Virus record (IMG/VR): IMGVR_UViG_3300027969_000039
Location: 239,058 to 303,057 of that record
DNA length: 64,000 bases
Reading direction: 5' to 3' (one strand)
Shown here: positions 41,267 to 61,751 of the stretch, one piece after another
Layout of the letters: every line of letters starts with the position of its first letter
Numbering within the stretch: position 1 is the stretch's first letter
Notes under the pieces: model-generated
Seen by the model: only the letters and a program-made list of their open reading frames with translations
Database searches by the model: none
What the model was told of the DNA's origin: nothing
Program-made: the position numbers and the translations under genes

Positions 41267-42092
41267 AATACTAGATGCTAATGCAGTAGAGGTCTATGAT
41301 GTTGACTATAAGAATTTATCTACGGATGAAGTTAATCAGATAGCAGAGTTGTATTTCAAACATCTTGTTGTGATAGCCAGGGATCAACACTTATCTCCAG
41401 AAGATATGATCAAGGTAGCAAATCAGTTTGGCGTTCCTGAATATTTTGATCCAGAAACACAACGACAAAGAGCCGCTGAGAATGTCAATGGAGTACAAAG
41501 AGTTTGCAAAGGATTCAATGACGATGGTACTCCTAAAGGATTGTTTGGGCATGATGAAGAATTGAATTGGCATGCTAATCGACCATCAGCAGAGAACGAA
41601 CGCAAACCTATCATATTCCTAGTAGCAGCACATGATACTAAAGGATCAAAGATAAGCTGGGCCAATATGGCATTAGCCTACGATGATCTAGACCAATCGA
41701 CTAAAGATTTCTTAGAAGATAAGAAAGGTATATATGGATTTGAGCCGGACACATATACTAAGTCATTCAACATATGGAAACCACATCGCAATAAAGATGG
41801 ACAGAATTTTATCAGAACGAATCCAGTAGGGATAAAAGGAATGTTTTTTCCTTATTATCAATTTTTTGGATTTAAAGATGTTGATGAGAAAACTAATCAA
41901 TATTATAAAGAACTTCTATTCAATCATTCTTATCAAGACAAATATTGCTATCACCATGAGTATGAAGATGGCGATGTTATATTTGGAGATCAGTGGTTAA
42001 CTGTTCACAAACGATGGGCTTGTGAATTAGGTAATAGAATGATCTATAGAGTTTCTATGGATTGGTCTAAATGTCTAACTATCTCATTGTAG
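41229..42092 (+). CDS. TauD/TfdA-family dioxygenase (start may be GTG at 41256)
   Basis: LVVIARDQ.LS, WHAN, G...WANM..AYDDL, Y.H....GDVI..DQ..TVHKR. Confidence 0.8.
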   Translation: MLFAERKLFVKYKILDANAVEVYDVDYKNLSTDEVNQIAELYFKHLVVIARDQHLSPEDMIKVANQFGVPEYFDPETQRQRAAENVNGVQRVCKGFNDDGTPKGLFGHDEELNWHANRPSAENERKPIIFLVAAHDTKGSKISWANMALAYDDLDQSTKDFLEDKKGIYGFEPDTYTKSFNIWKPHRNKDGQNFIRTNPVGIKGMFFPYYQFFGFKDVDEKTNQYYKELLFNHSYQDKYCYHHEYEDGDVIFGDQWLTVHKRWACELGNRMIYRVSMDWSKCLTISL

Positions 42093-42799
42093 TAGGTATT
42101 TAAAATAGTATTACAGTACTCAATTTTTTCTATTCTGAATGAGTCACCTATCATACTTTGTAGAAAATCGATAATATCTACAAATCTTCTATCAACTAGC
42201 ATAGTACATAAATCTATTGAATTTTGTGTAGGTTTGGTATTAAATTTATTTAACACCAATTTATTACTGTTTTCTTCTGTCCCGGGGTAACATGCGACAT
42301 TTCTATCAAATTGATATTTCAACCCTCTTTCAGTCGTTGGAATAATAGATAGTTGTTTTATATTATATCCTAAACTAATCATTTCATCGTACGGTATAAT
42401 ATTGCTCCAGGTATGCATACCATATATCAATCTCATATCTTTTATATCAACATCATTATTACTATAAAACTTAATATCATTTGTTTGATGTTTCCATTTT
42501 TGCTGTTGAGCAATCAAATGAGTTGCTAAATTTTCAAAAAAATAAACATAATCAATAGTAGATGAAGGGTCACACTTGTCTAAAAACCAATTCACTATTC
42601 TTTTTGGAATTAATATATCGTAATCAATTTCTCTTGAAGCTGCATTCTGATTTATTGTTGTAGCGGATAATATTCTTGAATTCTCATAGTGTAATTTACT
42701 ATCTAGTTCAGCCCATAATCTTAATAACAGCTGGCCAGATGAACCAGGCATATAATCTATTAAAATTAATTCATTGTTTTCTAGTATTGAAAATTTCAT
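42044..42799 (-). CDS. Hypothetical protein with N-terminal Y.PGS.G loop (sulfotransferase-like?)
   Basis: IDYMPGSSGQLLLRLW; last gene of the minus-strand run. Confidence 0.45.
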   Translation of the reverse strand: MKFSILENNELILIDYMPGSSGQLLLRLWAELDSKLHYENSRILSATTINQNAASREIDYDILIPKRIVNWFLDKCDPSSTIDYVYFFENLATHLIAQQQKWKHQTNDIKFYSNNDVDIKDMRLIYGMHTWSNIIPYDEMISLGYNIKQLSIIPTTERGLKYQFDRNVACYPGTEENSNKLVLNKFNTKPTQNSIDLCTMLVDRRFVDIIDFLQSMIGDSFRIEKIEYCNTILNTYYNEIVRHLDQSIETL

Positions 42800-42800
42800 G

Positions 42801-43370
42801 TCACACTAAATCAAGTAGAATATTATTTAGATTAGGATCTATTTTTGACACCCAAGTGTTTATTGAATAAATTTCTAGTTCTCTTTTATCTTCACCTCTT
42901 TCAATAGAATATTTAAAATCAAACACTTTTATTTTACCATTCTTATGTGTCATATTGGCCATTGCATTATTAATTTTGTAAATATTATTTTCTTTGAAGA
43001 ACTTAAAAATTTCAACTATTTGTTCTGATGCGTCAGGTATAATGTGATTTAATCTAGTACTTTCATGCTCGTACCAAGTCAACAAATCTGGATTTGTCCA
43101 CTCTTGTATTAAATAAAAACCCGGCTCGTCTTTTAATTCACCATGCTCGTATAATTCAATTACCATATCAGATTTTAATTTAGTTGACCAATGTATTTCA
43201 GTATTAAAAAGTGAGGTTATTCTTTCCATAGATGTCTCAAACGGTTTTTTGCCGGTTATAGTAATACTATCTGGTTTATAAAATTTTTTACAAAGACCTG
43301 CATCCTTGTCTACCCAAACTTCAGCGGCCGACCCGCGGGACCCATTATCTTTTTGAAATAATTTAAACAT
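42801..43370 (-). CDS. Atypical kinase-fold protein
   Basis: RGSAAEVW, CKKFY, E-helix, LIQEW, DLL, N..N, KVFDFK. Confidence 0.55.
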   Translation of the reverse strand: MFKLFQKDNGSRGSAAEVWVDKDAGLCKKFYKPDSITITGKKPFETSMERITSLFNTEIHWSTKLKSDMVIELYEHGELKDEPGFYLIQEWTNPDLLTWYEHESTRLNHIIPDASEQIVEIFKFFKENNIYKINNAMANMTHKNGKIKVFDFKYSIERGEDKRELEIYSINTWVSKIDPNLNNILLDLV

Positions 43371-43379: not shown

Positions 43380-43961
43380 TCAACGATTACTTAATATTAC
43401 TGCTACTAAATGAACTCTTGAACCTTTACTCCCATTAAATGCGGTATGTCTTTTTGTAGTATCTGCTATATGCCATTTGTTTAATGGTAAAGTCATAACT
43501 TCATCTTCTATTACTAAAAAACATCCTTCTTGTGATACAATTGGATAATGTAACCTAGGAGTATCATCAACATGCCAACTCAAACATGTTTTTGGTTTCA
43601 AATTCATCAATCTGATCCTACCTAATATATATCTTTCATTTAACATATTAAAAACTGTTTCAAAAGTTGTTCCTTTAAATTGACTGCACATGACCGTAAA
43701 GTCAGATTCATTTAACTGTTCTGTTTTTATAAAAAGATTACTAATATTATCAATACCGTTAACTGAATCTATTTTAGAATTATTCCAATCAAACATTAAA
43801 CTTCCTGCACCTTTGTGAAAATCATGTTCAAAATTTGGTATAGAATTTAAACAAATTTGATTTTGTTCTCCCCAGCTTAACACCTTTGAACTTATTAATT
43901 GATCAAGTTCTATGGATAGTGTTTCGAATGTTGGTAAATTTACTTCAGTAAAATATTTCAT
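43380..43961 (-). CDS. Aspartyl/asparaginyl beta-hydroxylase-like Fe(II)/2OG oxygenase
   Basis: GRIRLM.L.P..CLSWHVD...RLHYPI...DT...HTAFN.....RVHLV. Confidence 0.75.
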   Translation of the reverse strand: MKYFTEVNLPTFETLSIELDQLISSKVLSWGEQNQICLNSIPNFEHDFHKGAGSLMFDWNNSKIDSVNGIDNISNLFIKTEQLNESDFTVMCSQFKGTTFETVFNMLNERYILGRIRLMNLKPKTCLSWHVDDTPRLHYPIVSQEGCFLVIEDEVMTLPLNKWHIADTTKRHTAFNGSKGSRVHLVAVILSNR

Positions 43962-43981: not shown

Positions 43982-44506
43982 TTATGGTCTAATTAAGCAT
44001 TCAGTAACTCTATATTTAATTCCCCAATTAATCTGTTCTATTATATATTTTGCAGCATCGCTAACTTCTATATATGATTCAGGGTTACAATCTCTTAATA
44101 CCCGTTGAGTACCTACCCAGCCAAATTTAATATTAATTACTTTGCATGGATCGTCTAAATGACTTAATTGCTCAGAGGCTTTGTCTAATGCAATTTTGTG
44201 TGCTGTATACATGTGGGGAAAATTTTTGATTCCGCAAGTAGTGGATGAACCTATATTAACTATTATTTTGTTGGAACCTTGCCAAACTTTAAATAACTCG
44301 TATAACAAAGTTACCTGATTAAAATCAGCGTATGCATTATTGATGAATACATCACACTCAATAGACTGTAATATTATAGATTCTCTGTTTTCTTTAACTG
44401 TAATATCATATCCATTACTCTTAGAGAACCCTATATAATTTGATTCTAATAAATTAGTCAATGCTAATCCTATCCCTTGAGTATGACCTGTAATTGCGTA
44501 CTTCAT
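43982..44506 (-). CDS. Short-chain dehydrogenase/reductase-like protein
   Basis: AITGHTQGIG, DVFINNA, NIGS, YTAHK; ATGA overlap places the start at 44506. Confidence 0.75.
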   Translation of the reverse strand: MKYAITGHTQGIGLALTNLLESNYIGFSKSNGYDITVKENRESIILQSIECDVFINNAYADFNQVTLLYELFKVWQGSNKIIVNIGSSTTCGIKNFPHMYTAHKIALDKASEQLSHLDDPCKVINIKFGWVGTQRVLRDCNPESYIEVSDAAKYIIEQINWGIKYRVTECLIRP

Positions 44507-45138
44507 ACAAACCTTTTGAATCCCCAAAGTCTTTCTTTGCACCACCAGCAGTTATTACAGTGTCCTAAAAAATCAGCCGGAGGATTTTCTATTTCGCAGC
44601 TTCTAGTTAATGGAAATAACGTTTCTGTTAAGTTTAAAGAGTGGTACATTTCAGCTATTTTTATTTTATCAATATTAAAAAATGGAAAACAAAAATTATC
44701 ATAAATTATAGATTTTACTATTAACGGGTCTCTCTCCACATGTTCAGTATTGTCAATTGGTGTCAAAAAATTATCTGCTATGTCTTTAGGAGGATTAGCT
44801 GTTAATCCTGCATATAATTTAGTTATTTTTTTATTTTCTAACATTTCATTGGGCAATCTAAGTAATTTTTCATTATTTTGTACATCAAGATATACTACAT
44901 GATGATTTATATTATTGTTTTTGGTTAACTCTACGCACTTGTCAATTACATTAGCTGCAACTTTTGCCGGTAATCTTCCCTTAAGGTCTGGTGCTAATGT
45001 AAATACTTCAAGTGTTTCTTTTTTATTTAATAGTAAAATATACAATAAAAGGCTACTATCGGTTCCACCGGAGAAATTTATTCCTACGTTCCCATCAAAT
45101 AATGGAATTTCTACATTTTCTATTATTATATTTTTCAT
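44503..45138 (-). CDS. QueC-like PP-loop (adenine nucleotide alpha-hydrolase) protein
   Basis: SGGTDS, PF..IDK, LTRSC...HC..CWWC.ER.WGF. Confidence 0.75.
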   Translation of the reverse strand: MKNIIIENVEIPLFDGNVGINFSGGTDSSLLLYILLLNKKETLEVFTLAPDLKGRLPAKVAANVIDKCVELTKNNNINHHVVYLDVQNNEKLLRLPNEMLENKKITKLYAGLTANPPKDIADNFLTPIDNTEHVERDPLIVKSIIYDNFCFPFFNIDKIKIAEMYHSLNLTETLFPLTRSCEIENPPADFLGHCNNCWWCKERLWGFKRFV

Positions 45139-46244
45139 ATCGTCCTCTTTGGCAATTTACTATCGGCACTACTTACACATGAATTACTTATACAAATCAT
45201 AGGCTTATCGAATAATTTGAATCCAGTCTCTATGTTTCCCAGTGGAGTATCAGTGCAACTATAACTACGCTTGATACTACCATCTGGTTCTCTGATGATT
45301 ATGCCTTGAAATCCACTATTACATTCCCAACCTTTAAAATTGTTGAACCCGAACGCATTGAATCGTTCTGCTTGATCCATGTACCATTTCTTACCGTATT
45401 TATCAGTGAATTCTACTTGCATGTGTGCAGGCACACTACTATCATTTTCTCCTGCCATGTGAGGAGGAACTTCAAATTTAGCTTTTGGTCTATCATTCCA
45501 TACACGCTTCTTTTCAGTATAAGCACGTTGCGGCATACCATTATGTAACTGTTTCATCTGTTCTTCAGTATACCCACTGACTACAAAATTAGCAGTAGGA
45601 TCGCTCTGCGGTTTCAACGTGACATTGATTCCTTGATTGTGGAAGAACAATGCATTCTCGTAGTCTTTATCAAACCATGCGGGAACCATTACCATGTTGA
45701 TGGTTATCTGTACATCATGTTCTTGACAGAATATCAGTTTATCTGCAAAGTCTTGCATCTTCTCAATCGTGTCAAGATGCTCTGTGTGTAGACTCGCCGT
45801 GATGCTAGCACGATGAAATTTCTTAGCATGTTCTACATATGTCTCAAACCATTTCATATTCCTAGAACAGTTACTGGTCATATGTATGCTAGTGTAATTA
45901 GTATTGTCTACATCATTCGCTAGATACTTTAGTATGTCTAGATATCCAGGATGAAACGTAGGTTCACCACCACTTAGACTAAAATGAAAACTATTAAATC
46001 CATTAAGTCTAGCTTGAGATTTTATCTCATCTATAGTACTTAAGCATAACTCTGTAGGTCTATGGTCTTTCGTATCACTACGGGCATAAGGCCAGCAATA
46101 GCTACATTTGTAGTTACAAAATCTACCTAGCAACCAACTGACGGTGAATAGGTCACGATACAATAAAGTTCGTTGGCCTACTTGCACTATATCTTTAAAT
46201 GGGATTTTAGTGAAATCATAATCACTGTATTTTAAATCAGTCAT
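45135..46244 (-). CDS. Radical SAM protein with C-terminal SPASM/twitch region
   Basis: CNYKCSYC, SGGEPT, WEC.SG...SC...LGNI...C...C.S..D. Confidence 0.9.
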   Translation of the reverse strand: MTDLKYSDYDFTKIPFKDIVQVGQRTLLYRDLFTVSWLLGRFCNYKCSYCWPYARSDTKDHRPTELCLSTIDEIKSQARLNGFNSFHFSLSGGEPTFHPGYLDILKYLANDVDNTNYTSIHMTSNCSRNMKWFETYVEHAKKFHRASITASLHTEHLDTIEKMQDFADKLIFCQEHDVQITINMVMVPAWFDKDYENALFFHNQGINVTLKPQSDPTANFVVSGYTEEQMKQLHNGMPQRAYTEKKRVWNDRPKAKFEVPPHMAGENDSSVPAHMQVEFTDKYGKKWYMDQAERFNAFGFNNFKGWECNSGFQGIIIREPDGSIKRSYSCTDTPLGNIETGFKLFDKPMICISNSCVSSADSKLPKRTI

Positions 46245-47197
46245 AATATATATGGGGCCACATTAAATCCATGTTTGGACAATAACGACAAATTCTTTTT
46301 GTGCCAAACAATCAATTCATCATTAAATGATGAATCATAGTCAATATCAAATATTTCTTCTAAATATCCTTTAATAAAGATTTTAGAATAATCAATAATA
46401 GTAACTCCTCTTTCTTTTAATGCTGGGATTTGAAAATTTGAATAGGCTTCAAAATTTCCCATTATTTTATAAAAATACTTATTATATAAATCAAACGGAG
46501 TTGAATTAAAAATTTCATTAAAGGTAATGTTTTTATCATATTTCATATATGCAATTACGTCTAACTGCATTCCGTACATAATCGTTATGTTATTTTTTAT
46601 AACCCAATCTAGTCCATTGTTTAACAAGCTAGACAATTCAGCGTCATTTATATACCTACTACGGTCATGCTCAAAAAATTTAATTTTATCATTCTCTTTA
46701 AGGCAGATATGTTTAACTGCTAAATCTTTTATAAATAATAAACTTCCTGCATAAGTATACCATTTTTCATTATCAGCACATATCAAATAAGTATTTTCTT
46801 TAGTAAAGTATGAATTTGATAAAATATTGCATCTAAACAAAGGTGGCTTGTGATCTTGTTTTAAATAAACAATAGCCTCATTTACTTTGTCTTTTATGTT
46901 ATACCCTAAAAAATCATTTTTAGTTTTTATGACATTGATTAAATCAGTAATTGATGAATTGTAAGTAAGGTTGCAATGATATACTAAATGAAAAAAATAT
47001 GGCAATCTGACTAAAGTTCTATTTTCTGAAGTTACAATAACTTGAGTAGAAACATTATTCCTAAATTTTTTAGTATGTGTCGAGATTAAATTAGTTAAAA
47101 ATTCACCACCTGCCCCTCCACCATACATGAGATAGTATATTGGATAATTGCATAATGCTTCTAAAATTAGTTCATCATCATTCATATATAGCTCCAT
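46241..47197 (-). CDS. Hypothetical protein with N-terminal YGGGAGGEFL loop (start may be 47185)
   Basis: Glycine loop similar to that of 42044-42799; very AT-rich. Confidence 0.5.
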   Translation of the reverse strand: MELYMNDDELILEALCNYPIYYLMYGGGAGGEFLTNLISTHTKKFRNNVSTQVIVTSENRTLVRLPYFFHLVYHCNLTYNSSITDLINVIKTKNDFLGYNIKDKVNEAIVYLKQDHKPPLFRCNILSNSYFTKENTYLICADNEKWYTYAGSLLFIKDLAVKHICLKENDKIKFFEHDRSRYINDAELSSLLNNGLDWVIKNNITIMYGMQLDVIAYMKYDKNITFNEIFNSTPFDLYNKYFYKIMGNFEAYSNFQIPALKERGVTIIDYSKIFIKGYLEEIFDIDYDSSFNDELIVWHKKNLSLLSKHGFNVAPYIL

Positions 47198-48471
47198 GTT
47201 TTTATTAAAGTAGAAACAAATGGAAAAATATTAATCCAATCTTGTTTTTGATTTATAGCTAACCGATTAAATACTCCTACTAATTGTTTTCGTGTTTCAT
47301 TGAGCAACGATTCAGACATTATCATACGAGATGAGGTACAATACTTCTCATAAGAATCAAGTTTTTTTAATATTTTTTTGTCCCCGTTAGCTTTGTTTTT
47401 TACAATATCAAATATAGTATTCTGTTGCCGTTCATCAAGTAAATTGATATTGAAAAATGCTGGGTTATATACTAAATGACTAGTACCAGGATTTTCTATG
47501 TCTCTGTTTATCTTCTTATAGTTTTGCTTCTTTATCCATATCATTAAGTCAGAGTAATGTTCCAGTGTTAATATACTTACTGTAGTAGAAGTGAACACAG
47601 TAATGTTTTCCGCAGATTCATCCAACATTTTTAAATTTTGTTCAATAGTTTCCCATTTTGAAGGGTAACGAACAGCATCGTTAGCAATTCCATACGCATC
47701 TACACTAGCGCAAATTCTAATCACTTTGAATTTTTTCCACATGTCAAACAACAACGGAGGGAATACAGTTAAGTTCACGCTATATTCTAACTCAATGTTT
47801 TTTGCGTAACCTTCTTCTATCAACCTATTCAATAGATAATGATGGTACTTAATTATTAATGGTTCACCGCCACCGAACTTAATCTTGTTTAAATATTTTG
47901 AATTTTCGATTAATGCATCTATCTTATCTTTGTCATTGGCCCAATCAAAGTCGCTATCAGCTAATTTCAGATTGTAAATCTTGTCATCTACAATAAAATG
48001 ATCATGTCCAGTTATCTCTTGATAATCTTTATACCATAAGGTAGATTCACCGGGAAAACACATTACACATCGTAGATTACATTGATTTCCTATCCTAAGG
48101 TCTAGTGAAACTAACTTTGAATTAGTTATCGTACCGTCGACGGTCGTGCTGTTGATAGCATCATCAATAGTAAATGTATCTAAATGTCTTTTAGTTTCCC
48201 AATCGTTTCTGCTGTTACTTCCCGTACTAGTATCAACCTCACACCGCTTGCATTGTTCTGGCCACACCCCATTTAATATATCTTTGCGTACTTGCTTAAG
48301 TGTGTCACAATTTAATACATTGTCTATGTTAGCTAAACTATCTGCTTTCAATGTCACTTTATCTTTGGACAGCACGGTATTTTCATTACTACCACTTTGA
48401 CTATGGGAACACATACGGAGTGTTCCGTTATTTTTAATTGCGACATGAGTCCAAGGTAAAGGGCACCACAT
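47182..48471 (-). CDS. Radical SAM protein with N-terminal twitch/SPASM domain
   Basis: CPLPW...C, C.RC, DLRIGNQCNLRCVMC, GGEPL, RYPSKW. Confidence 0.9.
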   Translation of the reverse strand: MWCPLPWTHVAIKNNGTLRMCSHSQSGSNENTVLSKDKVTLKADSLANIDNVLNCDTLKQVRKDILNGVWPEQCKRCEVDTSTGSNSRNDWETKRHLDTFTIDDAINSTTVDGTITNSKLVSLDLRIGNQCNLRCVMCFPGESTLWYKDYQEITGHDHFIVDDKIYNLKLADSDFDWANDKDKIDALIENSKYLNKIKFGGGEPLIIKYHHYLLNRLIEEGYAKNIELEYSVNLTVFPPLLFDMWKKFKVIRICASVDAYGIANDAVRYPSKWETIEQNLKMLDESAENITVFTSTTVSILTLEHYSDLMIWIKKQNYKKINRDIENPGTSHLVYNPAFFNINLLDERQQNTIFDIVKNKANGDKKILKKLDSYEKYCTSSRMIMSESLLNETRKQLVGVFNRLAINQKQDWINIFPFVSTLIKTWSYI

Positions 48472-48491
48472 ATATTCTTATTTGTTATTGA

Positions 48492-48510
48492 TATTTATAC
48501 AGTATAAATA
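48492..48510. promoter_or_regulatory. Back-to-back T4-type late promoters (TATAAATA on both strands)
   Basis: Perfect inverted repeat TATTTATAC-A-GTATAAATA between divergent genes. Confidence 0.7.
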
Positions 48511-48527
48511 CGCTGGGAACAATACTT

Positions 48528-49373
48528 ATGCGTGATTCGGAGAATAGACAATATACAAGTGAATGGCTACAACATGAACGCCCTCAACCCATGTACGATT
48601 CATCTATCAACAAACTATATGAATCAGTTTTCTACACCAATCCGGCATACAATGATGATATAGCTAATGAATTCAAAATAGAATTCATACATTTTCTTAA
48701 CAATCATTCACTCAGTAAATTATCAGGTATTGATATGTTCCCTCATACTGATATATGTGTGGGGTGTACCCAATTTATTGATGATATCTATCAGCGTGTA
48801 GGTACCAATGATGTTATGATATTTGAAAATGATTACAAATATCACTGGAGATTGAACAATGACATTGAATATGTTACATTAGATACGCTTGTTCCAAATA
48901 AAGAATTGATAATCTCTATGCCTTTCCCTGCACACGGAGATGTGCATCCATTAATGCATACTATATTAGACCGTTGCGAACAACTAGATATACCCGTGCA
49001 TTTAGACGGTGCATGGATAACTTGTAGTAGAGATATAACATTCAACTTTGATCACCCTGCTATCAAAACTTTTGCTGTAAGTCTAAGCAAAGGTGGAATG
49101 GGCAATGATAGAATAGGTGTACGATTTTCACGCACTAGACCATGTGGAGCGATAACCATAATGAATGACTTTAATATGAATTGCAAAAGCCTGTTACATA
49201 CTGGATTGAAGTTTATGCAAGAGTTAGGTTCTGAATATTTCTGGAAAAAATATGAGACTAGATACTATAAAGTATGTGAAGATTTCAATCTAATACCCAC
49301 TAAATCTATACATGTAGCTAAAACAATGCAAGGAAAAATCGTAGGTATCAGACCTTTGTTGAGATGTTTATAA
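48528..49373 (+). CDS. PLP-dependent enzyme-like protein (fold type I)
   Basis: VHLDGAW and FAVSLSKG (candidate Schiff-base Lys), R.G.R. Confidence 0.65.
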   Translation: MRDSENRQYTSEWLQHERPQPMYDSSINKLYESVFYTNPAYNDDIANEFKIEFIHFLNNHSLSKLSGIDMFPHTDICVGCTQFIDDIYQRVGTNDVMIFENDYKYHWRLNNDIEYVTLDTLVPNKELIISMPFPAHGDVHPLMHTILDRCEQLDIPVHLDGAWITCSRDITFNFDHPAIKTFAVSLSKGGMGNDRIGVRFSRTRPCGAITIMNDFNMNCKSLLHTGLKFMQELGSEYFWKKYETRYYKVCEDFNLIPTKSIHVAKTMQGKIVGIRPLLRCL

Positions 49374-55503: not shown

Positions 55504-55828
55504 TTTTTATTTCTTTAAATGAAATGTTTATACTATCATCTCTTACATCAGACTTATCTATGTTGTCATTTATTTTGTCACTACAAAATTTAGAACAAAC
55601 TGATTTTTCATTTTTCCAACTTTCTTCTATTTTTTTCATAGCTTGACTATTTTTCATTTCAGCTAAAGAATATTTTTTACCATCTAGCTGTTCATATAAA
55701 GGTCCTAAAAATTCTGTCACTTTATTAATATATGGTTCATTTGCTATCCAGCAACATGGAAAATAGAAGCCATGAGCAGAAATATAGTCTGATGTTAATC
55801 CTTTTTTACATCTAGGATAAATTAACAT
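55493..55828 (-). CDS. Stand-alone SPASM/twitch Fe-S domain
   Basis: PRC...ISAHG.YFPCCW...IEESW....VCSKFC; GAGG RBS. Confidence 0.7.
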   Translation of the reverse strand: MLIYPRCKKGLTSDYISAHGFYFPCCWIANEPYINKVTEFLGPLYEQLDGKKYSLAEMKNSQAMKKIEESWKNEKSVCSKFCSDKINDNIDKSDVRDDSINISFKEIKNDF

Positions 55829-56456
55829 AGCGCCTCTGTACTTCTTGCCAATCTATCGTTGGTGTTAATGGATCTTCACTTTCATATCTTACACTTTTTA
55901 CAATGCTAAATTCATGGAATCCTAATTTTCTTGCTAAGTATATACCTTCGTCAATATTGTATTGATTATACTTAAATAAAATCCATTTCCAAATTATTTT
56001 AATATTAGGATTATATTCTACTAAAGTCTTAATACCGTTTTCAATAGTTTCCCACTTGCTATTAACTCTATATAAATGATTGTTGTTTGGTAATCCATCT
56101 ATTGAAAATACAATGTTGTCACGATGGTCAAGTATGCTTGCTGTTTCTTTCCACCAATCGATACTTCTAAATGCACCATTAGTATGCATACCTATACTCA
56201 TGTGGGGATGTGCTGTTCGTATACTAGATATTAATTCGTGAAATTTAGGGTGATATATAGGATCACCGTGATTGCCACACATGACAAACTTCTTTTTTCC
56301 CTCAGCTAATTTTACGGTAGTGTCAATATCACAATCTTCTAATTTAATATTATCAATTGACAATGTTCGCGGGCAATGCGGACATGCTAACGTACACCTA
56401 CTAGTAGGTTCTATGTGTAGTACTCTGTCATCTATCCAAATATCTTCATTATTCAT
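55812..56456 (-). CDS. Radical SAM core domain (lacks auxiliary domain)
   Basis: HIEPTSRCTLACPHCPR, CGNHGDPI, HTNG, FSIDG, YR. Confidence 0.88.
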   Translation of the reverse strand: MNNEDIWIDDRVLHIEPTSRCTLACPHCPRTLSIDNIKLEDCDIDTTVKLAEGKKKFVMCGNHGDPIYHPKFHELISSIRTAHPHMSIGMHTNGAFRSIDWWKETASILDHRDNIVFSIDGLPNNNHLYRVNSKWETIENGIKTLVEYNPNIKIIWKWILFKYNQYNIDEGIYLARKLGFHEFSIVKSVRYESEDPLTPTIDWQEVQRRYVNLS

Positions 56457-56461: not shown

Positions 56462-57730
56462 TTAAATAACAAATTCATCTAACCATGGAAATAAAGGTTT
56501 CCAATTTAAATTTCTTCTTCTATCTATATCATCTAGTTGAATTTTTAGTTCTTTTACTAATTCAGGGCAATAAGGTTGATTATTAATAGTATCACGATAT
56601 CCACTAAGTTTTTCTTTGAGATATTCAGATGGTGCAACTGCAATCATCCTGTCAAAATCTTCATCAAAAAACCCATTAGGAAATATATCGGCTCGCAAAT
56701 AAGTCATATAGTCAGCAAAACTAAAAGAAATTTCAATTAGCGAAAGATCATTTGTTGTTCTGATATTGTTATAATAATTAATTTTTTCAATTAATTCTGG
56801 ATATGTTTTTATAGTTAAGTTGCACATAGTAGAATGTACTACTAATTTTATTTTAGGGTATTCTGCTATTAACGTTTTAAAATTTTCTTCCCATTGAATT
56901 AAATCTAAACCATGTCTAACATATTCTTCTTGTGGTCCCCATGCATCAATGCTACAAAATATTCTAAAAGATTTTATATGATTTTTAGTAACTAAATTTT
57001 CTACTTTATCTAATATTTTTCTAAATTTAGTATTTGATACTTTTAAATTTGAAAAAATACTAAAAATTAATTCAGGGCATGGATTTGTTTCAAAAAATTC
57101 TATATTTTGTTCAAACTCAGGTTGAAAAAATGGCTCACCACCTAACAAATTATATTCTCTTATAGACAATGCATTTTTTTCCAACCAAGCCCAATATTTT
57201 TTTACTAATATGGGATAGTCTTTTTTTCTGTCAATATGTTTATCTAACTCTTTTTGTGATTTTAAATTAAATTTAATATCTTCATTTTCCCATACCGTGC
57301 TATATTCTGAATTGCAATAAAGGCAAGCCATGTTACATAAATTATTGAAATATACTTCAACAATAGTTGGCGATACTTTAATAGCTTTATTATTATTTAA
57401 CAATTCAACAGCAGGTTTTACATAGTGTTTGCTAGTAGGATGCACGTTTAAATTTACACTCATCCTATCACTAATGCCACCACTCTTTTCAATTTTTTCG
57501 CAATATTCACATCCTTTGCCGGGCCAACGGCCATCTAACATATCTTTCCTGGTACTTAATTTTAAAGGAGTATTGTGAAAATCTTCAATGTTTTCAACTG
57601 TTATTTCATCGGGGTTTACTCTATGACAACTGTTTGTTTTTTTAGCATATATATTTATTGAACTCCATGAAAATTTCCACACACAAGCCGGTTCCGGCAT
57701 TCCATATATATCTTTAAAATTATTTTTCAT
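56462..57730 (-). CDS. Radical SAM protein with N-terminal twitch domain
   Basis: C.WK..WS...SCHRV, CEYC, EVYFNNLCNMACLYC, GGEPF; ATGA overlap places the start at 57730. Confidence 0.9.
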   Translation of the reverse strand: MKNNFKDIYGMPEPACVWKFSWSSINIYAKKTNSCHRVNPDEITVENIEDFHNTPLKLSTRKDMLDGRWPGKGCEYCEKIEKSGGISDRMSVNLNVHPTSKHYVKPAVELLNNNKAIKVSPTIVEVYFNNLCNMACLYCNSEYSTVWENEDIKFNLKSQKELDKHIDRKKDYPILVKKYWAWLEKNALSIREYNLLGGEPFFQPEFEQNIEFFETNPCPELIFSIFSNLKVSNTKFRKILDKVENLVTKNHIKSFRIFCSIDAWGPQEEYVRHGLDLIQWEENFKTLIAEYPKIKLVVHSTMCNLTIKTYPELIEKINYYNNIRTTNDLSLIEISFSFADYMTYLRADIFPNGFFDEDFDRMIAVAPSEYLKEKLSGYRDTINNQPYCPELVKELKIQLDDIDRRRNLNWKPLFPWLDEFVI

Positions 57731-58395
57731 ATGAGTCTTCCAAATCCCCATTTTCTTTCATGGCACCACCAGCAAGTTTCACAATGTGGTGTTGACCAAT
57801 CATAAGTCTTAGCTTCGCAACTTTTAGTGATTGGAAATAATGTATCCATCAAGTTAAAATGATTATATAATTCTGCTATTCCTTTTTTATCTAAATTAGC
57901 AAAAGGTCTATAACATCTAGGTCCCGGCATAACTGATTTTATTTCTTCTGTGCGGTCTCTCCTAAAATCTCTCTCGTCTATCACAGCTTCATTAAATGAA
58001 TTGCACACTTCAGGTGGTGGATTGCAATTAATACCAGTGACATGGCAATCAATAATTTCATTTTTATACGCTCCTTCAGTCAGTATATCTTGTGCATCTT
58101 GTAATTCGGGTCCTTCCATTACAGGATCACAATGTAAATGTTCACTAAATTTGATATCAAATTCTTTCTCACAAAATTCTATTACTCTTTTACTAAAAAT
58201 AAATTGATAAGGTTTTAAAATATTGACCGCAGTTATAGGATGTATACTGATTTCTGGTCTTTCAGTTACTTTATACTTCGATAGTATATAGCAGATCATG
58301 GCGCTATCTGCGCCGCCTGAGATTTTAATTCCCACTTTATTGAATTGTGGATCTATAGTAAAATCTATATCCTGTTGAGAATTTTTGATAAACAT
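57727..58395 (-). CDS. QueC-like PP-loop protein (second copy)
   Basis: SGGADS, NPP, RPF.NLDK, TKSC...HC..CWWC.ER.WGF. Confidence 0.75.
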   Translation of the reverse strand: MFIKNSQQDIDFTIDPQFNKVGIKISGGADSAMICYILSKYKVTERPEISIHPITAVNILKPYQFIFSKRVIEFCEKEFDIKFSEHLHCDPVMEGPELQDAQDILTEGAYKNEIIDCHVTGINCNPPPEVCNSFNEAVIDERDFRRDRTEEIKSVMPGPRCYRPFANLDKKGIAELYNHFNLMDTLFPITKSCEAKTYDWSTPHCETCWWCHERKWGFGRLI

Positions 58396-58397
58396 GA

Positions 58398-59483
58398 TTA
58401 CTTAAATTGTTCTGTGAATACATCAAACTCTGTGCCGCATTTTTGTGAACACACTTCTAATTTCCCTGCTGCTACACTAGATAATTTCCAACTTGATTCT
58501 ATTTTTGAAAATAATTTACTATTGTCAATAACATCACTCAAATCGTTGTTGATAACATCGATGCCTTTTTTACCGCCTGTATTATCAATTATGTGCCAAA
58601 TTTGTTCTATTCTGTAATCTTCATGCCACCATTTATACATTCTACCTGCTGTCCAGCAGCAAGGCATAAGCAGTCCTTCGGCAGTGATAAAAATATTACC
58701 TTCTTTAACAACCTTACAATCTATTTTACAACTGTCATAGTATTTAGTCATGCTCCCGTGTTGAGCAATTAATTCTTGTTCTTTGGATAAAACACGATTT
58801 TGAAATTCTTCTTTAGGTTTTTTAAGCAATATAGTTTCCGTGCCTTTCCGATTTTGTGCTTGATGTTCTTCTTTTCCTTGATTTCTTGCAGTGCTAAAAA
58901 ATCTAGCAGTTTTCTTTTTAGTAAATTTTTCACATCCCCACTCATTTGCTAACTTTTCGGCTTCTTCCACTTGATGTTGATTGTGTTCAAATATGATATA
59001 ATCCCATCTTGCTCTGCCACCTGCATTGATAAAACTACGCATACTGTTTTCTACTATACTCCATTTAACATTTTGGCGATATAGATGATTAGTATCTACT
59101 AACCCATCCACAGAGAATATTACAGCACCTTTGTTGTTGTATATCTTGGCTAATTCTGTCCACCAATCAGTATCTCTAGCCCCTGCGTTAGTATTCATAC
59201 TGAGCCACATGTTTGCATTATGTTCTCTAAAATATCGAAATACTTCTAGTGTATCTCTAGCAACTATTGGATCACCTAAATTACCGCACATGTACATTGT
59301 GTCTAGCTGACTAATAAATTTTGTGGAGAATATCTTTTTGCAATCATCTAAAGATAGTTCAGCATTGGTGATGTGTTTATTATCTTTGCCACCGTTCTCG
59401 TTGCGGTCACACATTGGACATGCTGCTTGACATAACTGTGTTATCTCTAAATGAACTTTCTTTATATCTTTTGATTTATACAT
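58398..59483 (-). CDS. Radical SAM protein with C-terminal twitch domain
   Basis: HLEITQLCQAACPMC, CGNLGDP, FSVDG, C...FITAEG..PCCW...C...C. Confidence 0.9.
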   Translation of the reverse strand: MYKSKDIKKVHLEITQLCQAACPMCDRNENGGKDNKHITNAELSLDDCKKIFSTKFISQLDTMYMCGNLGDPIVARDTLEVFRYFREHNANMWLSMNTNAGARDTDWWTELAKIYNNKGAVIFSVDGLVDTNHLYRQNVKWSIVENSMRSFINAGGRARWDYIIFEHNQHQVEEAEKLANEWGCEKFTKKKTARFFSTARNQGKEEHQAQNRKGTETILLKKPKEEFQNRVLSKEQELIAQHGSMTKYYDSCKIDCKVVKEGNIFITAEGLLMPCCWTAGRMYKWWHEDYRIEQIWHIIDNTGGKKGIDVINNDLSDVIDNSKLFSKIESSWKLSSVAAGKLEVCSQKCGTEFDVFTEQFK

Positions 59484-60175
59484 TATTTTATGCCGATACG
59501 CATATATCGTGTGTACTTATCAAGCGCCAATTCACCTTCATATAGCATAGTAGACATTGGAGATTGTATTCTAAATTCTTCTAAGCTATTAGAACAATTT
59601 ATATGATCTTCAATCTCAACGTAGTTATTGGTTTGAAGTATAACTATCTTATTATTAGGTATGTTATTGTACCAAACATCAAAATTATGTATATGTTCAC
59701 AGCTAGTATTGATGATGGTGTTTGCAGAATCAGTTAATTCTAATTTACTTCTATCATATCTATGAGTTTCATATTTAAAATTTTCATAAATTAGATTATG
59801 TATATCTACTGTAGCTGCTTTAAATTGCCAATTATTTTTTACTTTTTCTCTGTTTATAGTTTCTGCTACTCGTTCACACAACGGATCAATGTCAAAGCTA
59901 CGAATTTTATCTATTATGCAACTACTCTCAAATAACATTGGTGCTAATGTAGCATACCAACCAGCACATAAAAATATGATACCTAAATCTAAGTTTAATT
60001 TTTCTAATTCAGATACTAACCATCGTTTACTTTTTAGTTGTCCCCAGCTTAACGCATCAGACAAGTCAGCACCCTCATTATCAACTGCATTGCATAATTG
60101 ACTAAACAATTTGTTTTGAGTTAAAACAAACATTCTTCCAAACGTATCTTTATCATCTGTCCAATTAATTGTCAT
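59483..60175 (-). CDS. SAM-dependent methyltransferase-like protein
   Basis: GQLKSK.WL, LCAGWYA, SFDIDP, INTSCEH, RYMRIG. Confidence 0.6.
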   Translation of the reverse strand: MTINWTDDKDTFGRMFVLTQNKLFSQLCNAVDNEGADLSDALSWGQLKSKRWLVSELEKLNLDLGIIFLCAGWYATLAPMLFESSCIIDKIRSFDIDPLCERVAETINREKVKNNWQFKAATVDIHNLIYENFKYETHRYDRSKLELTDSANTIINTSCEHIHNFDVWYNNIPNNKIVILQTNNYVEIEDHINCSNSLEEFRIQSPMSTMLYEGELALDKYTRYMRIGIK

Positions 60176-61751
60176 CAAATTTCTCCTTTAACCAATCAAA
60201 GTTATTAATCTTTGATAGTGCTAGTAAATGGCCTTTATTTAATGTTCCGTATGATCTGCCTTGAATTGCACCAGCAATCGCATATTTACCATATGGTCTA
60301 TCAGCACCCACTGTACACCATGTTTCCAATCTATTAAATGTTTCCTCATCGTTCTGTCTGTCAATGACTTTACTTGCTAGTTTGCAACATTCTCTAAATG
60401 CACTACGCCAAGCACTAAATGCGTCAGTATTGAAATTTGTTATGTTGCTAACTTCAAATACGGGCTTGTACTTAGTGCTGATACTGGTGGTCATGTCAGG
60501 CTTACTCAAGTCCATGTTGATTGTTAACTCTCTAGGGAATAACTTGATGCCACCAAATCCATACTCTAAGTCATTGACTGGATTCTTACTGCGCCAAACA
60601 TAAACCCAGTCCATCTTGTCTGGATGAACGATATAGTCAAAATTAAAATTCTTGTTTATTACGGCATCACCATCTACTATCCAAACCATCTTAGTGTTGG
60701 CTAACTTAGCAGCAGTAATATGTGCATTATGTATACCTTTAACACCGTCAACTCTTTTTGCTCTTGGGAATCTACGCTTAAGATTAGTCCAATTCTCCTC
60801 AGCATTAGGTTCATTGTATGTTACCATAATAATATCATATTCATACTCATTAATAGTATCAACTGAGTGTATCGTTTTGGGTTGTCTATCGGGGTTGAAT
60901 TCTAAAGTTTTAATGAATTTGCTTTGTTCACTAGTAAATGGTTCACATATTGGGATAATGCTACCTAAAGTTTTGCATTCGTTTACTGCATCTAACACTG
61001 ACATTTTTTCTACCGTAGATTTATACAAATCATTTAAATAATCAAAATCTCTTACTTGAGTAAAATCCCAATTTGTATATTGTGTTTTATAACATCCTTG
61101 TCTAGCACCTAATATAGCCCATATGCCATTATTAACCTCTATTCCAGTAGTCATCCAAATTTTTAGTCTATTTAAATTACCTATGTTTAAGTCTGCTAAT
61201 TCATCGACTTTAATTCCGTTATGCAAGCACATCTTTACCCCTTCACGGAATCCAGCACGCCATGCTTGCAACTGGCTAGTATTATTGTGTATTATAGAAT
61301 ATGACTTATCTATTGCCATATAATTTAATGCCCAACAAAAATCTACTTGAGTCATGGGATCATTTAGATCCGCTGCCTCATGTGTTTTCATATCAAGCAT
61401 TGCTTGTACAGGCCAACATTTGATTCCCCCGTTGCCGTACAATAAACCGTTGATGATATTCTTACTGGGCCAACTAAAGACTGTTTTACTGTCATCGATT
61501 GAATCATCTAACACTAGTGTCTGATGTAGATATTTGTGGTCAATAACCGCATCGCCGTCAATGACTGATACTCGTGGGGTAGTTGCTAATTTTGCAACCG
61601 CTTTGTGTGCAGCGTCACTACCTTTAACTCCATGAACCCTTTTGGCATAAGGAATTTTTGTTAACAAATCTTCCCAATTTGCTTGTGCATTTGGCTCATC
61701 ATAGCTAAGATAGACAACATCGTATTCGTAGATTTTAAATTCTTTACTCAT
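60165..61751 (-). CDS. Protein with two tandem GT-A glycosyltransferase-like domains
   Basis: Two copies of YD....Y.EPNA..NW..L...P.AKRV.GVKG...AH...A.......DGD ... N..N.L.YG.GGIK ... AWR..FRE..K. Confidence 0.65.
   Translation of the reverse strand: MSKEFKIYEYDVVYLSYDEPNAQANWEDLLTKIPYAKRVHGVKGSDAAHKAVAKLATTPRVSVIDGDAVIDHKYLHQTLVLDDSIDDSKTVFSWPSKNIINGLLYGNGGIKCWPVQAMLDMKTHEAADLNDPMTQVDFCWALNYMAIDKSYSIIHNNTSQLQAWRAGFREGVKMCLHNGIKVDELADLNIGNLNRLKIWMTTGIEVNNGIWAILGARQGCYKTQYTNWDFTQVRDFDYLNDLYKSTVEKMSVLDAVNECKTLGSIIPICEPFTSEQSKFIKTLEFNPDRQPKTIHSVDTINEYEYDIIMVTYNEPNAEENWTNLKRRFPRAKRVDGVKGIHNAHITAAKLANTKMVWIVDGDAVINKNFNFDYIVHPDKMDWVYVWRSKNPVNDLEYGFGGIKLFPRELTINMDLSKPDMTTSISTKYKPVFEVSNITNFNTDAFSAWRSAFRECCKLASKVIDRQNDEETFNRLETWCTVGADRPYGKYAIAGAIQGRSYGTLNKGHLLALSKINNFDWLKEKFDDN

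Follow-up and report, generated by a model that had tools for sequence, protein, structure and literature searches.

Clusters of radical SAM genes have been noticed before in aquatic myophages. The host recognition cluster of the pelagimyophages contains radical SAM cassettes together with glycosyltransferases (Zaragoza-Solas et al. 2020, PMC7029224), and a T4-like marine viral genome carries 12 radical SAM genes (Nishimura et al. 2017, PMC5332604), but both papers only mention these genes and give no function. The protein family most relevant here, the twitch domain-containing radical SAM proteins (N_Twi_rSAM, NCBIfam NF033640), has no assigned reaction either, and our search found no paper on it. 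The locus that we describe lies in a window of 64,000 nucleotides (positions 239,058 to 303,057 of the IMG/VR record IMGVR_UViG_3300027969_000039) from a freshwater jumbo phage with a genome of at least 364 kb. As in the published cases, where they lie in a hypervariable region of aquatic myophages, many radical SAM genes are found here with glycosyltransferases, and the cultured pelagimyophage Mosig shares homologues of six genes of this region (g09, g15, g16, g20 and the TauD and desaturase-like genes listed below). However, VrlC and gp14 were not identified in our window, and the conserved scaffold of such islands is defined here and not in those papers.

A preliminary description, made from the sequence alone, had reported ten radical SAM/SPASM-twitch enzymes with accessory tailoring enzymes at 42044-61751, and our analysis confirms this observation. 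An ORF listing gives 20 minus-strand genes and one plus-strand gene that exactly fill this interval, with most neighbors overlapping by 1-25 nt or separated by 1-20 nt. There are two minus-strand blocks, 61751->49368 (12 genes) and 48471->42044 (8 genes), with the single plus-strand gene between them. The genes (numbered g01 to g21) and their surroundings are as follows.

60165-61751, minus strand: g21, two tandem GT-A (GT2-like) glycosyltransferase domains with a DGD (DxD) motif; first gene of the upstream operon
59483-60178, minus strand: g20, class I SAM-methyltransferase fold with a non-canonical motif I; scaffold gene
58398-59483, minus strand: g19, radical SAM with a CGNLGDP motif and a C-terminal twitch-like Cys cluster; scaffold gene
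57727-58395, minus strand: g18, QueC-like PP-loop ATPase (SGGADS plus a C-terminal Cys4 site)
56462-57751, minus strand: g17, N-terminal-twitch radical SAM
55812-56456, minus strand: g16, radical SAM core only, with a CGNHGDP motif; first half of a split enzyme
55493-55828, minus strand: g15, stand-alone twitch-like Cys domain (C7, C25, C26, C78, C82); second half of the split enzyme
54310-55503, minus strand: g14, N-terminal-twitch radical SAM
52932-54320, minus strand: g13, N-terminal-twitch radical SAM; most conserved gene of this island type
52009-52935, minus strand: g12, short radical SAM (308 aa) with C-terminal Cys residues
50691-52037, minus strand: g11, N-terminal-twitch radical SAM
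49368-50687, minus strand: g10, N-terminal-twitch radical SAM
48528-49373, plus strand: g09, truncated fold-type-I PLP (aminotransferase-like) protein; the only plus-strand gene of the 21
48472-48527, no strand: divergent intergenic region with two outward-facing TATAAATA motifs (48492-48499, minus strand; 48503-48510, plus strand), candidate T4-type late promoters for g08 and g09
47182-48471, minus strand: g08, N-terminal-twitch radical SAM; first gene of the downstream operon
46241-47197, minus strand: g07, unknown protein, sulfotransferase-like / DUF2972-like (a lead only)
45135-46244, minus strand: g06, radical SAM (369 aa) with C-terminal Cys residues; scaffold gene
44503-45138, minus strand: g05, QueC-like PP-loop ATPase (SGGTDS; Cys at 181, 194, 197, 200)
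43982-44545, minus strand: g04, short-chain dehydrogenase/reductase (SDR)
43380-43961, minus strand: g03, Asp/Asn beta-hydroxylase-family (cupin, Fe/2OG-type) oxygenase
42801-43370, minus strand: g02, mini protein-kinase-like fold (a lead only)
42044-42799, minus strand: g01, unknown protein; last gene of the downstream operon
41229-42092, plus strand: TauD/TfdA-family Fe/2OG dioxygenase, convergent with g01; probably part of the island
40466-41266, plus strand: membrane di-iron desaturase/hydroxylase-like protein with three His boxes and two hydrophobic segments; probably part of the island

Ten of these proteins (g06, g08, g10 to g14, g16, g17 and g19) have the CxxxCxxC motif. Eight of them exceed the Pfam Radical_SAM cutoff (for example, g06 with 47.8 bits and g16 with 36 bits), and while the other two score only 20 bits, one of these passes NF033640. 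Six island proteins pass the NF033640 cutoff of 170 bits over their full length, sharing an N-terminal Cys-rich domain followed by the CxxxCxxC core: g13 (422.8 bits), g10 (380 bits), g14 (365.8 bits, with a Pfam SPASM match of 53.9 bits at residues 7-70), g11 (354.9 bits), g08 (292.8 bits) and g17 (217.5 bits). In g19 the motif is at residue 18 and further Cys residues are at 252, 256, 275, 276, 345 and 349. With respect to the architectures, the type that had been called C-terminal SPASM has in fact a twitch-like Cys pattern and not the canonical 7-Cys SPASM motif. Moreover, one of the ten is a split gene (g16 and g15); the same split is conserved in Mosig, where a homologous small ORF follows the g16-like gene, and in the related locus L073.

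The accessory genes of the preliminary description were also confirmed, with one exception. The double GT-A protein g21 shows an internal repeat, and its two halves are separate genes in most related loci. Its alignment has invariant D58/D60, and an AF2 model of the C-terminal half (pLDDT 93.9) retrieves with Foldseek GT-A enzymes in the PDB (PcManGT, GtrB, WrtF, ppGalNAc-T, SunS and TarS; prob 1.0, TM 0.4-0.5) as well as viral GT-A glycosyltransferases. For g20, an alignment and an AF2 model (pLDDT 88.4) were made, and the top Foldseek hits are the NodS N-methyltransferase, RebM and small-molecule methyltransferases; homologues occur in Ralstonia phage RsoM2USA (34%) and in Mosig (30%). Both PP-loop proteins carry SGGxDS and a QueC-like C-terminal Cys4 site, but they are far below the QueC equivalog cutoff (scored for g05, the paralogue of g18). 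The oxygenase g03 matches PF05118 with 33.3 bits against a cutoff of 22.6, and the same family recurs in related islands. The SDR g04 has only weak Pfam and NCBIfam hits, but is supported by its TGHTQGIG, NNAY and YTAHK motifs (TGxxxGIG, NNAY and YxxxK). The PLP protein g09 has a weak NCBIfam hit, a profile match to PDB aminotransferases (E 1.7e-4) with invariant D160, S185-x-x-K188 and R195, and a Mosig homologue that is annotated as an aminotransferase. The exception is the kinase-like g02, which is only a lead: the ESM Atlas gives 0.98 to Pkinase/APH/RIO1 clusters, and a phmmer search of the PDB gave TTK kinase at E 0.027. Likewise g07 has a feature score of 0.92 to Sulfotransfer_1 and DUF2972 clusters in the Atlas, and a structural TM of 0.45-0.47; an N-twitch radical SAM elsewhere is fused to a weak Stf0 sulfotransferase match. 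No family hit was obtained for g01.

Two further corrections are necessary. Firstly, the island probably extends leftwards to at least 40466, since homologues of both the desaturase-like gene (PF00487, 51 bits) and the TauD gene (PF02668, 79 bits) sit in the related island of Mosig; TauD also lies beside the island in the related locus L085. Secondly, T4-type late-promoter motifs had been said to precede 61751, 48471 and 48528. Two exact TATAAATA motifs do face outwards in the 56-bp gap 48472-48527, a layout that Mosig also has between its two tailoring operons, but upstream of 61751 the coding strand has only ATTAAATA, and window-wide the motif is not enriched (8 found against 11 expected).

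This island is not unique. At least 258 IMG/VR loci hold a relative of g13, and the 78 listed loci from other contigs match it at 76-84% identity; g13 also has 3696 metagenome proteins and 8379 clusters at 50% identity, and g14 more than 3000 metagenome homologues. In a comparison of 80 loci there were 5-12 radical SAM genes per 21 kb, with a median of 9, around a conserved scaffold. Orthologues of g19 at >=50% identity are present in 60 of the 80 loci (median 64%), those of g06 in 41 loci (median 79%), and g10 has orthologues at 43-54% identity in many loci. Parts of the module occur in two cultured phages: RsoM2USA has the minimal series GT-A / N-twitch radical SAM / GT-A / methyltransferase-like, where g17 is the closest window paralogue of its ORF349, and Mosig has related genes between its baseplate and tail-fiber genes. 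In addition, one bacterial gene cluster starts with a sugar-1-phosphate nucleotidyltransferase (NTP_transferase, PF00483) that is followed by at least ten radical SAM genes and an AsnB-type amidotransferase, and a TPR-N-twitch fusion lies about 3 kb from a polysaccharide locus.

What these comparisons show is the composition of the block: it is one copy of a widespread, modular radical-SAM tailoring island of aquatic myophages and jumbo phages. Its scaffold is two soluble GT-A domains, a NodS-like methyltransferase fold, the C-twitch radical SAM g19, the N-twitch radical SAMs g13 and g10, and g06. The scaffold is combined with changing sets of N-twitch paralogues, QueC-like PP-loop ATPases, SDRs, a PLP aminotransferase-like protein, Fe/2OG oxygenases, and sulfotransferase-like and kinase-like proteins. 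Its function, on the other hand, can only be inferred. Our preferred but tentative reading is a late-expressed, cytoplasmic carbohydrate-tailoring pathway. In this view the GT-A domains would put sugar(s) on an acceptor and the twitch radical SAM enzymes would abstract H atoms from sugar carbons, giving keto-sugars, epimers, deoxy or C-alkylated positions, as BtrN, DesII and NeoN do on sugars. The SDR and PLP enzyme would reduce or aminate the keto intermediates, the PP-loop enzymes would turn carboxylates into amides by adenylation, and the methyltransferase, kinase-like and sulfotransferase-like proteins would cap hydroxyl or amino groups. The outcome would be a strain-specific, heavily modified glycan. 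The likeliest acceptor would be the phage's own surface proteins, here the giant collagen-like (Gly-Ala-Thr)n fibers encoded at 5-24 kb and made late in infection, in which case the variable enzyme set would diversify the virion surface.

The earlier proposal of a late pathway that builds an unusual glycan or modifies virion proteins, plausibly the Thr- and Asn-rich fibers, is partly supported. A glycan is favored by the GT-A pair and NodS/RebM-like fold at the conserved head of the island, by the DegT/ArnB-type sugar aminotransferase, epimerase and NodU/TobZ-type carbamoyltransferase of Mosig (the carbamoyltransferase is also in the related islands L067, L074 and L085), and by the nucleotidyltransferase that leads the bacterial analogue. 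Nevertheless, no substrate, product or acceptor has been shown, no nucleotide-sugar synthesis gene was found in the window, and the GT-A fold match is generic and does not identify the acceptor. Twitch and SPASM enzymes also act more often on peptides than on sugars, and the nearest solved structures, SkfB and viperin, give no guidance. A virion target and late timing are favored by the absence of membrane or Und-P machinery, with all 21 island proteins predicted to be soluble, and by the situation in the T4-like Mosig, where the homologous genes lie between VrlC and the tail-fiber genes, partly on the same strand as the latter, and where, as in the window, TATAAATA pairs stand at operon heads. 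However, the timing in this phage has not been shown, we could not show that it uses a T4-type late sigma factor, and no RNA data set was listed. The fibers really are Thr-, Asn- and Gly-rich, with 2082 residues in G-X-Y runs and Thr at the Y position, but their link to the island is positional only. RNR, endolysin and other genes separate the two in this window, and collagen-like fibers are absent from the sequenced parts of Mosig and RsoM2USA that were scanned.

Among the alternatives, direct post-translational modification of virion proteins or of a remote precursor, without any glycan, survives best, although we consider it unlikely. The radical SAM enzymes would make cross-links, epimerize or C-methylate residues, while the Asp/Asn-hydroxylase- and TauD-type oxygenases would hydroxylate side chains and the PP-loop enzymes amidate them, much as in proteusin- or sactipeptide-type maturation. 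Most characterized SPASM/twitch enzymes are peptide maturases, the weak NCBIfam side hits are to PapB, SkfB, RumMC and WgkB, and the Asn- and Thr-rich fibers are nearby. PF05118 hydroxylases act on protein Asp/Asn, and related islands add B12-radical SAM genes, a combination found in polytheonamide maturation. No RiPP hallmark was found, which does not exclude this possibility: neither a PqqD/RRE domain nor a precursor-like small ORF is conserved across the 80 loci. The head of the island is a GT-A pair plus a methyltransferase rather than a leader-binding protein, and a bacterial analogue is led by a sugar nucleotidyltransferase.

Somewhat less likely is a remodeling of the host envelope (LPS, O-antigen, lipid A or capsule) during infection to block adsorption of competing phages. 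For the glycosyltransferases of the pelagimyophage host-recognition cluster such a role, by modification of the O-chain, was proposed (PMC7029224). PF05118 also contains the lipid A hydroxylase LpxO, a membrane desaturase-like gene flanks our island, and in Vibrio phage K566 a distant N-twitch radical SAM cluster lies near a PagP gene. This reading is not excluded, but there is no flippase (Wzx), polymerase (Wzy), initiating sugar-phosphate transferase or periplasmic signal among the island proteins, and superinfection exclusion is usually an early function, whereas the motifs and position here point to late genes.

Hypermodification of the phage DNA to evade host restriction, with glycosyl or other groups added to a modified base and then tailored by the radical SAM, PLP, kinase and PP-loop enzymes, is doubtful. 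QueC-like PP-loop proteins are present and ribonucleotide reductase is nearby, and radical SAM, PLP enzymes, kinases and glycosyltransferases all occur in thymidine or deazaguanine hypermodification pathways. Assignment of the enzymes to such a pathway had been set out in advance as grounds for abandoning the virion proposal, but the QueC and QueE matches are far below the equivalog cutoffs (19.7 against 150 bits, and 19-25 against 206 bits). Similarly, no DpdA/TGT, FolE, QueD, hydroxymethylase or aGPT-Pplase hit was found in any scanned protein, although, as only 64 kb of the genome was inspected, such absences are weak evidence and DNA modification is not excluded. The DNA glucosyltransferases of T-even phages are not GT2-like GT-A enzymes, and in Mosig the homologues sit in the structural module. 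Finally, a diffusible small molecule for host takeover or against competitors (a modified nucleoside, aminoglycoside-like compound or cofactor) is equally doubtful, for although the mix of twitch dehydrogenase-type radical SAM enzymes, aminotransferase, SDR, carbamoyltransferase, methyltransferase and kinase resembles aminoglycoside or nucleoside antibiotic pathways, with BtrN, TobZ and NodS the closest analogues, and the bacterial cluster with the NTP_transferase has no obvious acceptor protein, there is no exporter or self-resistance gene, a lytic phage gains little from a slow multi-step metabolite and the position in the structural/host-recognition region of Mosig argues against it.

Considering other known systems, the BtrN and anSME-type twitch and SPASM dehydrogenases also combine a radical SAM core with one auxiliary Fe-S domain, and in the butirosin pathway the oxidation of a sugar-like alcohol by BtrN is followed by a PLP aminotransferase, the same enzyme pairing as in this island. 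In the phage N-twitch proteins, however, the auxiliary domain is N-terminal (permuted) and there is no significant sequence match to BtrN or anSME, the best solved relatives, SkfB and viperin, matching the core only. Virus-encoded virion glycosylation is exemplified by A064R of chlorovirus PBCV-1 (two glycosyltransferase domains plus a methyltransferase domain), by mycobacteriophage Che8 and by the collagen glycosylation of Mimivirus. The resemblance lies in soluble virus-encoded GT-A domains next to a methyltransferase, with collagen-like fibers as a possible acceptor. The g21 model matches the Che8 and giant-virus GT-A glycosyltransferases weakly, homology to A064R was not tested and glycosylation is not shown here, and none of those systems contains radical SAM enzymes. 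The Nod-factor set NodC/NodS/NodU/NodH likewise has counterparts in a GT2-type GT-A, a NodS-like methyltransferase fold, the NodU/TobZ-type carbamoyltransferase of related islands and the sulfotransferase-like lead. This is a resemblance of fold and enzyme classes only, with a sequence identity of about 10% and no NodA or NodB equivalents, and Nod pathways have no radical SAM enzymes.

The ten radical SAM genes and their neighbours exactly fill positions 42044-61751, with 20 genes on the minus strand and one on the plus strand, which we number g01 to g21 by coordinate. Most neighbouring genes overlap by 1-25 nt or lie only 1-20 nt apart. The GC content is low (0.29-0.35) and the GC skew is reversed relative to the plus-strand fibre region, which fits minus-strand transcription. 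The observation made in the preliminary description is confirmed, with minor corrections. The features of the island and its surroundings are the following:

5258-14287 and 16595-24418, in the plus-strand fibre region: two giant fibre ORFs (3009 and 2607 aa).
24768-27604: three tandem paralogues (302, 328 and 307 aa) of a glycine-rich domain protein (PF21722, 30-35% Gly), directly after the fibre genes.
28461-32800: class Ia ribonucleotide reductase large and small subunits, separated by a 304-aa ORF with no family hit.
37681-38142: a rubrerythrin gene.
48471 to 42044, minus strand: the block of genes g08 to g01.
Between the two minus-strand blocks: the plus-strand gene g09 and a 56-bp divergent gap.
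61751 to 49368, minus strand: the block of genes g21 to g10.
61752-62411: a 660-nt stretch without a convincing gene, containing on the minus strand a GC-rich hairpin followed by T's at about 62070-62105, and a doubtful 80-aa ORF at 62167-62409.
62412-63952, opposite strand to g21 and running away from the island: a tRNA array in which ARAGORN finds 11 tRNAs and Rfam 12, the extra one at 62580-62650.

All ten of the radical SAM proteins carry the CxxxCxxC motif for the SAM-cleaving [4Fe-4S] cluster, and eight of them pass the Pfam cutoff for the radical SAM core (PF04055). Of the remaining two, g17 passes the NCBIfam model NF033640 ("twitch domain-containing radical SAM protein", N_Twi_rSAM) instead, while g19 scores only 20.4 bits but matches W_rSAM_matur at E 3e-11; membership of the superfamily is therefore clear. 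Six proteins exceed the curated NF033640 cutoff of 170 bits over their full length (g08, 292.8; g10, 380.0; g11, 354.9; g13, 422.8; g14, 365.8; g17, 217.5 bits), whereas g06, g12, g16 and g19 do not. In these six the Cys-rich auxiliary domain is N-terminal, with invariant Cys at alignment positions C7, C67 and C70 plus C122, C126 and C129. The g19 protein has the same kind of domain at its C-terminus, and g16 plus g15 is the same enzyme type split into two ORFs, a split that is conserved in other phages and so is not an assembly error. Although the preliminary description spoke of SPASM domains, none of these domains has the canonical seven-Cys motif (CX9-15GX4C - gap - CX2CX5CX3C - gap - C) of the SPASM subgroup with its two auxiliary clusters: they have 4-6 Cys, no CX2CX5CX3C stretch, and are matched by the Pfam SPASM model only in their first half. 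They fit the shorter twitch type, and "twitch" is the better word.

Among the accessory genes, the g21 gene is an internal duplication of a 225-300 aa domain that is encoded as two separate genes in most related loci. An AF2 model of its C-terminal copy (pLDDT 93.9) matches GT-A/GT2 glycosyltransferases, both in the PDB and among viral models, with probability 1.0; there are 61 PDB matches at E<=1e-3, all of the 50 listed being GT-A enzymes. A DGD motif (D58-x-D60) is invariant in 19 sequences, and the domain thus satisfies the criteria for a GT-A fold, transfer activity not having been assayed. The g20 protein folds as a class I methyltransferase (pLDDT 88.4), its nearest structures being NodS, RebM and small-molecule methyltransferases. 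It has an acidic SFDID motif, but motif I reads LCAGWYA rather than GxGxG, so that SAM binding is unproven and its assignment as a SAM-dependent methyltransferase is left undecided. The genes g05 and g18 encode paralogous PP-loop proteins with SGGxDS and a QueC-like C-terminal Cys4 site, both scoring far below the QueC equivalog cutoff, g04 has the SDR motifs TGxxxGIG, NNAY and YxxxK, and g03 passes the cutoff of the Asp/Asn beta-hydroxylase family. The g09 family keeps the Asp, SxxK and Arg of fold-type I PLP enzymes, and its profile hits aminotransferases, although a single-sequence search of the PDB with g09 gave nothing. The g02 protein looks like a mini protein kinase fold and g07 like a sulfotransferase, but both of these are leads only, and g01 is unknown. 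Profile searches of g20, g21 and the N-twitch family against PDB sequences returned nothing specific, and single-sequence PDB searches with the unknown flanking proteins returned nothing. All 21 proteins lack hydrophobic membrane segments.

The island probably extends further to the left, at least to 40466. On the plus strand and convergent with g01 lie a TauD-family dioxygenase and a membrane di-iron desaturase-like protein with three His boxes, and further left are an SDR-like protein and the rubrerythrin. Homologues of TauD and of the desaturase-like protein sit inside the related island of Pelagibacter phage Mosig, and TauD also lies beside the island in a related locus (L085). At the place equivalent to the rubrerythrin, Mosig has a peroxiredoxin and an FMN reductase; the rubrerythrin and these genes may provide oxidative protection or electron supply for the Fe-S and Fe/2OG enzymes. 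To the right, the tRNA array might have suggested a role in tRNA modification, but only 2 of 42 related loci have tRNAs nearby and we rejected this argument from context. An Rfam search of 40-64 kb found only tRNAs.

The sequence is identical to IMG/VR contig 3300027969_002424 (211.6 kb), and the same genes also lie on a 363.7-kb JGI contig, so this is a jumbo phage. The sequencing runs that hold it are freshwater and lake metagenomes. There is no near DNA match among 50,697 GenBank phage records, and protein-level matches in isolates are few and distant. Nevertheless, g13 has relatives in 258 IMG/VR loci, of which the 78 listed from other contigs match at 76-84% identity. A word-index search found 3696 related environmental proteins (the 120 listed are 77-97% identical), and the family spans 8379 clusters at 50% identity. 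We compared 80 loci, in which a scaffold recurs in the order GT-A (one or two genes, or fused), g20, g19, then g13, then a g10-like gene, then g06. Between these lie changing numbers of N-twitch and C-twitch radical SAM paralogues, PP-loop proteins and SDRs. Other loci also have B12-binding radical SAM genes, further Asp/Asn hydroxylases, nitroreductase-like proteins, DUF6071, carbamoyltransferases and an AMP-binding enzyme. Loci of at least 20 kb hold 5-12 radical SAM genes (median 9), and ten is therefore normal for this island type.

Parts of the island are found in two cultured phages. In the Ralstonia jumbo phage RsoM2USA, ORFs 350-347 (positions 7836-11557 of the locus we call L088) encode a GT-A protein (43% identical to g21), an N-twitch radical SAM, a second GT-A (45%) and a g20 homologue (34%). 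This looks like a minimal module, although all four genes are annotated as hypothetical. Mosig, where the genes concerned are numbers 72-94, carries homologues of g09, g16, g15, g20, TauD and the desaturase-like gene, in a block that also has a DegT/ArnB-type sugar aminotransferase, an epimerase, a carbamoyltransferase, an acetyltransferase, methylases, further MoaA-like radical SAM genes and two Asp/Asn hydroxylases. The papers on RsoM2USA and Mosig do not discuss these genes. The Mosig block lies between the baseplate gene VrlC and the tail-fibre genes, inside the T4-like structural module and partly on the same strand as the fibres. In addition, a KVP40-like phage, Vibrio phage K566 (L001, 15001-21701), has four distant N-twitch-like radical SAM genes (22-25% identity), a few kb from PagP and NAD-salvage genes.

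There are also cellular analogues. A bacterial MAG (GCA_027401895.1, also FK5.bin95) has an operon (L090, 2164-20026) that begins with an NTP_transferase of the sugar-1-phosphate nucleotidylyltransferase family. At least ten radical SAM genes follow, including B12-binding ones and TPR-fused N-twitch proteins, one of them a 1106-aa TPR protein with two N-twitch radical SAM units, and an AsnB-type amidotransferase lies next to the operon on the opposite strand. Alignments of the N-twitch proteins offered no conserved stretch with which to scan bacterial genomes, and a scan with a single protein found only the same MAG again. Another TPR-N-twitch fusion lies about 3 kb from a polysaccharide locus. 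The other N-twitch fusions are tandem radical SAMs and one weak sulfotransferase match, and large fusions of the GT-A domain gave no extra Pfam domain.

With respect to timing, the 56-bp gap between g08 and g09 holds two outward-facing exact TATAAATA motifs, 21 and 18 nt from the start codons. Mosig, which encodes an annotated late sigma factor, has the same divergent pair in the 35-bp gap between its two tailoring operons. Across 73 related loci the motif is about 12 times denser in upstream gaps than overall, but this rests on only 15 hits. Moreover, upstream of g21, where the preliminary description had also placed a late-promoter motif, only ATTAAATA is present, and the motif is not enriched window-wide. 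Late expression is therefore plausible but not shown. Early expression had been specified beforehand as an outcome that would count against a late pathway, but no RNA data set was listed. A scan for sigma-70 promoters and terminators gave no more sites than in shuffled sequence.

Assignment of the enzymes to a known DNA-hypermodification pathway, likewise singled out in advance as evidence against a pathway acting on virion glycans or proteins, was examined directly. The 7-deazaguanine pathway of DNA or tRNA modification is not supported: the QueC model TIGR00364 scores 19.7 bits against a cutoff of 150.3, with only the C-terminal Zn motif matching, the QueE models score 17-33 bits against cutoffs of 206-260, and no FolE, QueD or TGT hit was found among the scanned window proteins, the rest of the genome not having been seen. 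For thymidine hypermodification (5-HMUDK, aGPT-Pplase), no such Pfam or PHROG hit was found in the island and the only kinase-like protein has a protein-kinase-like fold; since the libraries may lack sensitive models and only 64 kb of the genome was available, this does not settle the matter in either direction. Nor does the island have the hallmarks of a RiPP maturation cluster. No island protein has a PqqD-type hit, and the conserved small ORFs that we checked among the 80 related loci either overlap longer conserved genes (antisense or in another frame) or are the stand-alone twitch domain g15. A remote precursor is not excluded, but no precursor peptide or RRE domain is conserved in the 80 loci.

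What our data establish directly is the gene content, the folds, the conserved scaffold, the wide distribution and the genomic positions; the chemistry and the target are inferred. The interpretation offered in the preliminary description, a late pathway that builds an unusual glycan or modifies virion proteins, is partly supported. We favour, tentatively and as a hypothesis only, a cytoplasmic carbohydrate-tailoring line. The invariant head of the island is a GT-A pair plus a methyltransferase fold, and the recurrent partners belong to classes typical of sugar modification (sugar aminotransferase, epimerase/SDR, carbamoyltransferase, amidating enzymes, and kinase- and sulfotransferase-like proteins). 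Furthermore, one bacterial analogue starts with a sugar nucleotidyltransferase, and conserved precursor peptides and RRE domains are lacking in the 80 loci. Twitch radical SAM enzymes can oxidise, epimerise or deoxygenate sugars, as BtrN, NeoN and DesII-type chemistry show, and a keto-sugar made in that way would be the natural substrate for the SDR and the PLP enzyme. A virion acceptor is favoured because there is no membrane or Und-P machinery and because of the position among structural genes in Mosig. The two giant fibres add a specific candidate. They are collagen-like, with 2082 residues in runs of at least 8 G-X-Y triplets, mostly G-A-T with Thr in the Y position, and the 2607-aa protein also has 4.4 NxS/T sequons per 100 residues. 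This link is not general, however, since neither Mosig, including its fibres, nor the RsoM2USA stretches examined have such runs; the co-occurrence of island and collagen-like fibres across IMG/VR, a comparison of the kind proposed at the outset, was not measured. Thr-in-Y collagens such as Bacillus BclA are O-glycosylated.

Of the alternatives, direct protein modification is unlikely but survives best, for it fits the usual substrates of twitch/SPASM enzymes and the hydroxylases, but it lacks RiPP hallmarks. Remodelling of the host envelope, the published suggestion for the glycosyltransferases, seems somewhat less likely still, as the needed membrane steps are missing. DNA hypermodification is suggested by the QueC-like, PLP and kinase-like genes, but it is doubtful; the defining genes were not found (in the 64 kb visible of a genome of at least 364 kb) and the QueC/QueE matches fail their cutoffs. 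A diffusible small molecule is equally improbable, though not excluded.

A more far-reaching possibility, which we consider unlikely but compatible with the evidence, is that aquatic phages carry a radical-SAM-based glycan (or glyco-peptide) diversification line. A fixed GT-A/methyltransferase/rSAM core would lay down a sugar on virion fibres, here collagen-like (Gly-Ala-Thr)n, and a fast-evolving set of up to a dozen permuted-twitch radical SAM enzymes would then rewrite the carbon skeleton of that sugar. Such chemistry is not known for any virus and would give each phage lineage its own virion surface. The uncharacterised family NF033640 would then be a large new class of carbohydrate-modifying radical SAM enzymes. 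If the product is a virion glycan, it would add a new layer to phage host recognition and to phage-phage or phage-grazer interactions in lakes and oceans, and it would assign a first function to a large orphan radical SAM family. If it is instead a DNA or protein modification, it would still be a new pathway.

Radical SAM gene clusters of this kind have been mentioned twice, without explanation, for marine T4-like phages: in a viral genome with 12 radical SAM genes (PMC5332604) and as radical SAM cassettes in the host recognition cluster of pelagimyophages (PMC7029224). The present island shares tailoring genes with the latter, and fibre genes lie in the same window. However, VrlC and the neck gene gp14 were not identified here, and ribonucleotide reductase and endolysin genes lie between the fibres and the island, so that its equivalence to a pelagimyophage/cyanomyophage host recognition cluster is neither borne out nor refuted. 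Compared with these earlier reports, our analysis shows that the island type is very common, that it has a definable core, that it reaches from SAR11 phages to freshwater and soil jumbo phages, and that two cultured phages, RsoM2USA and Mosig, carry parts of it and can serve as tractable models.
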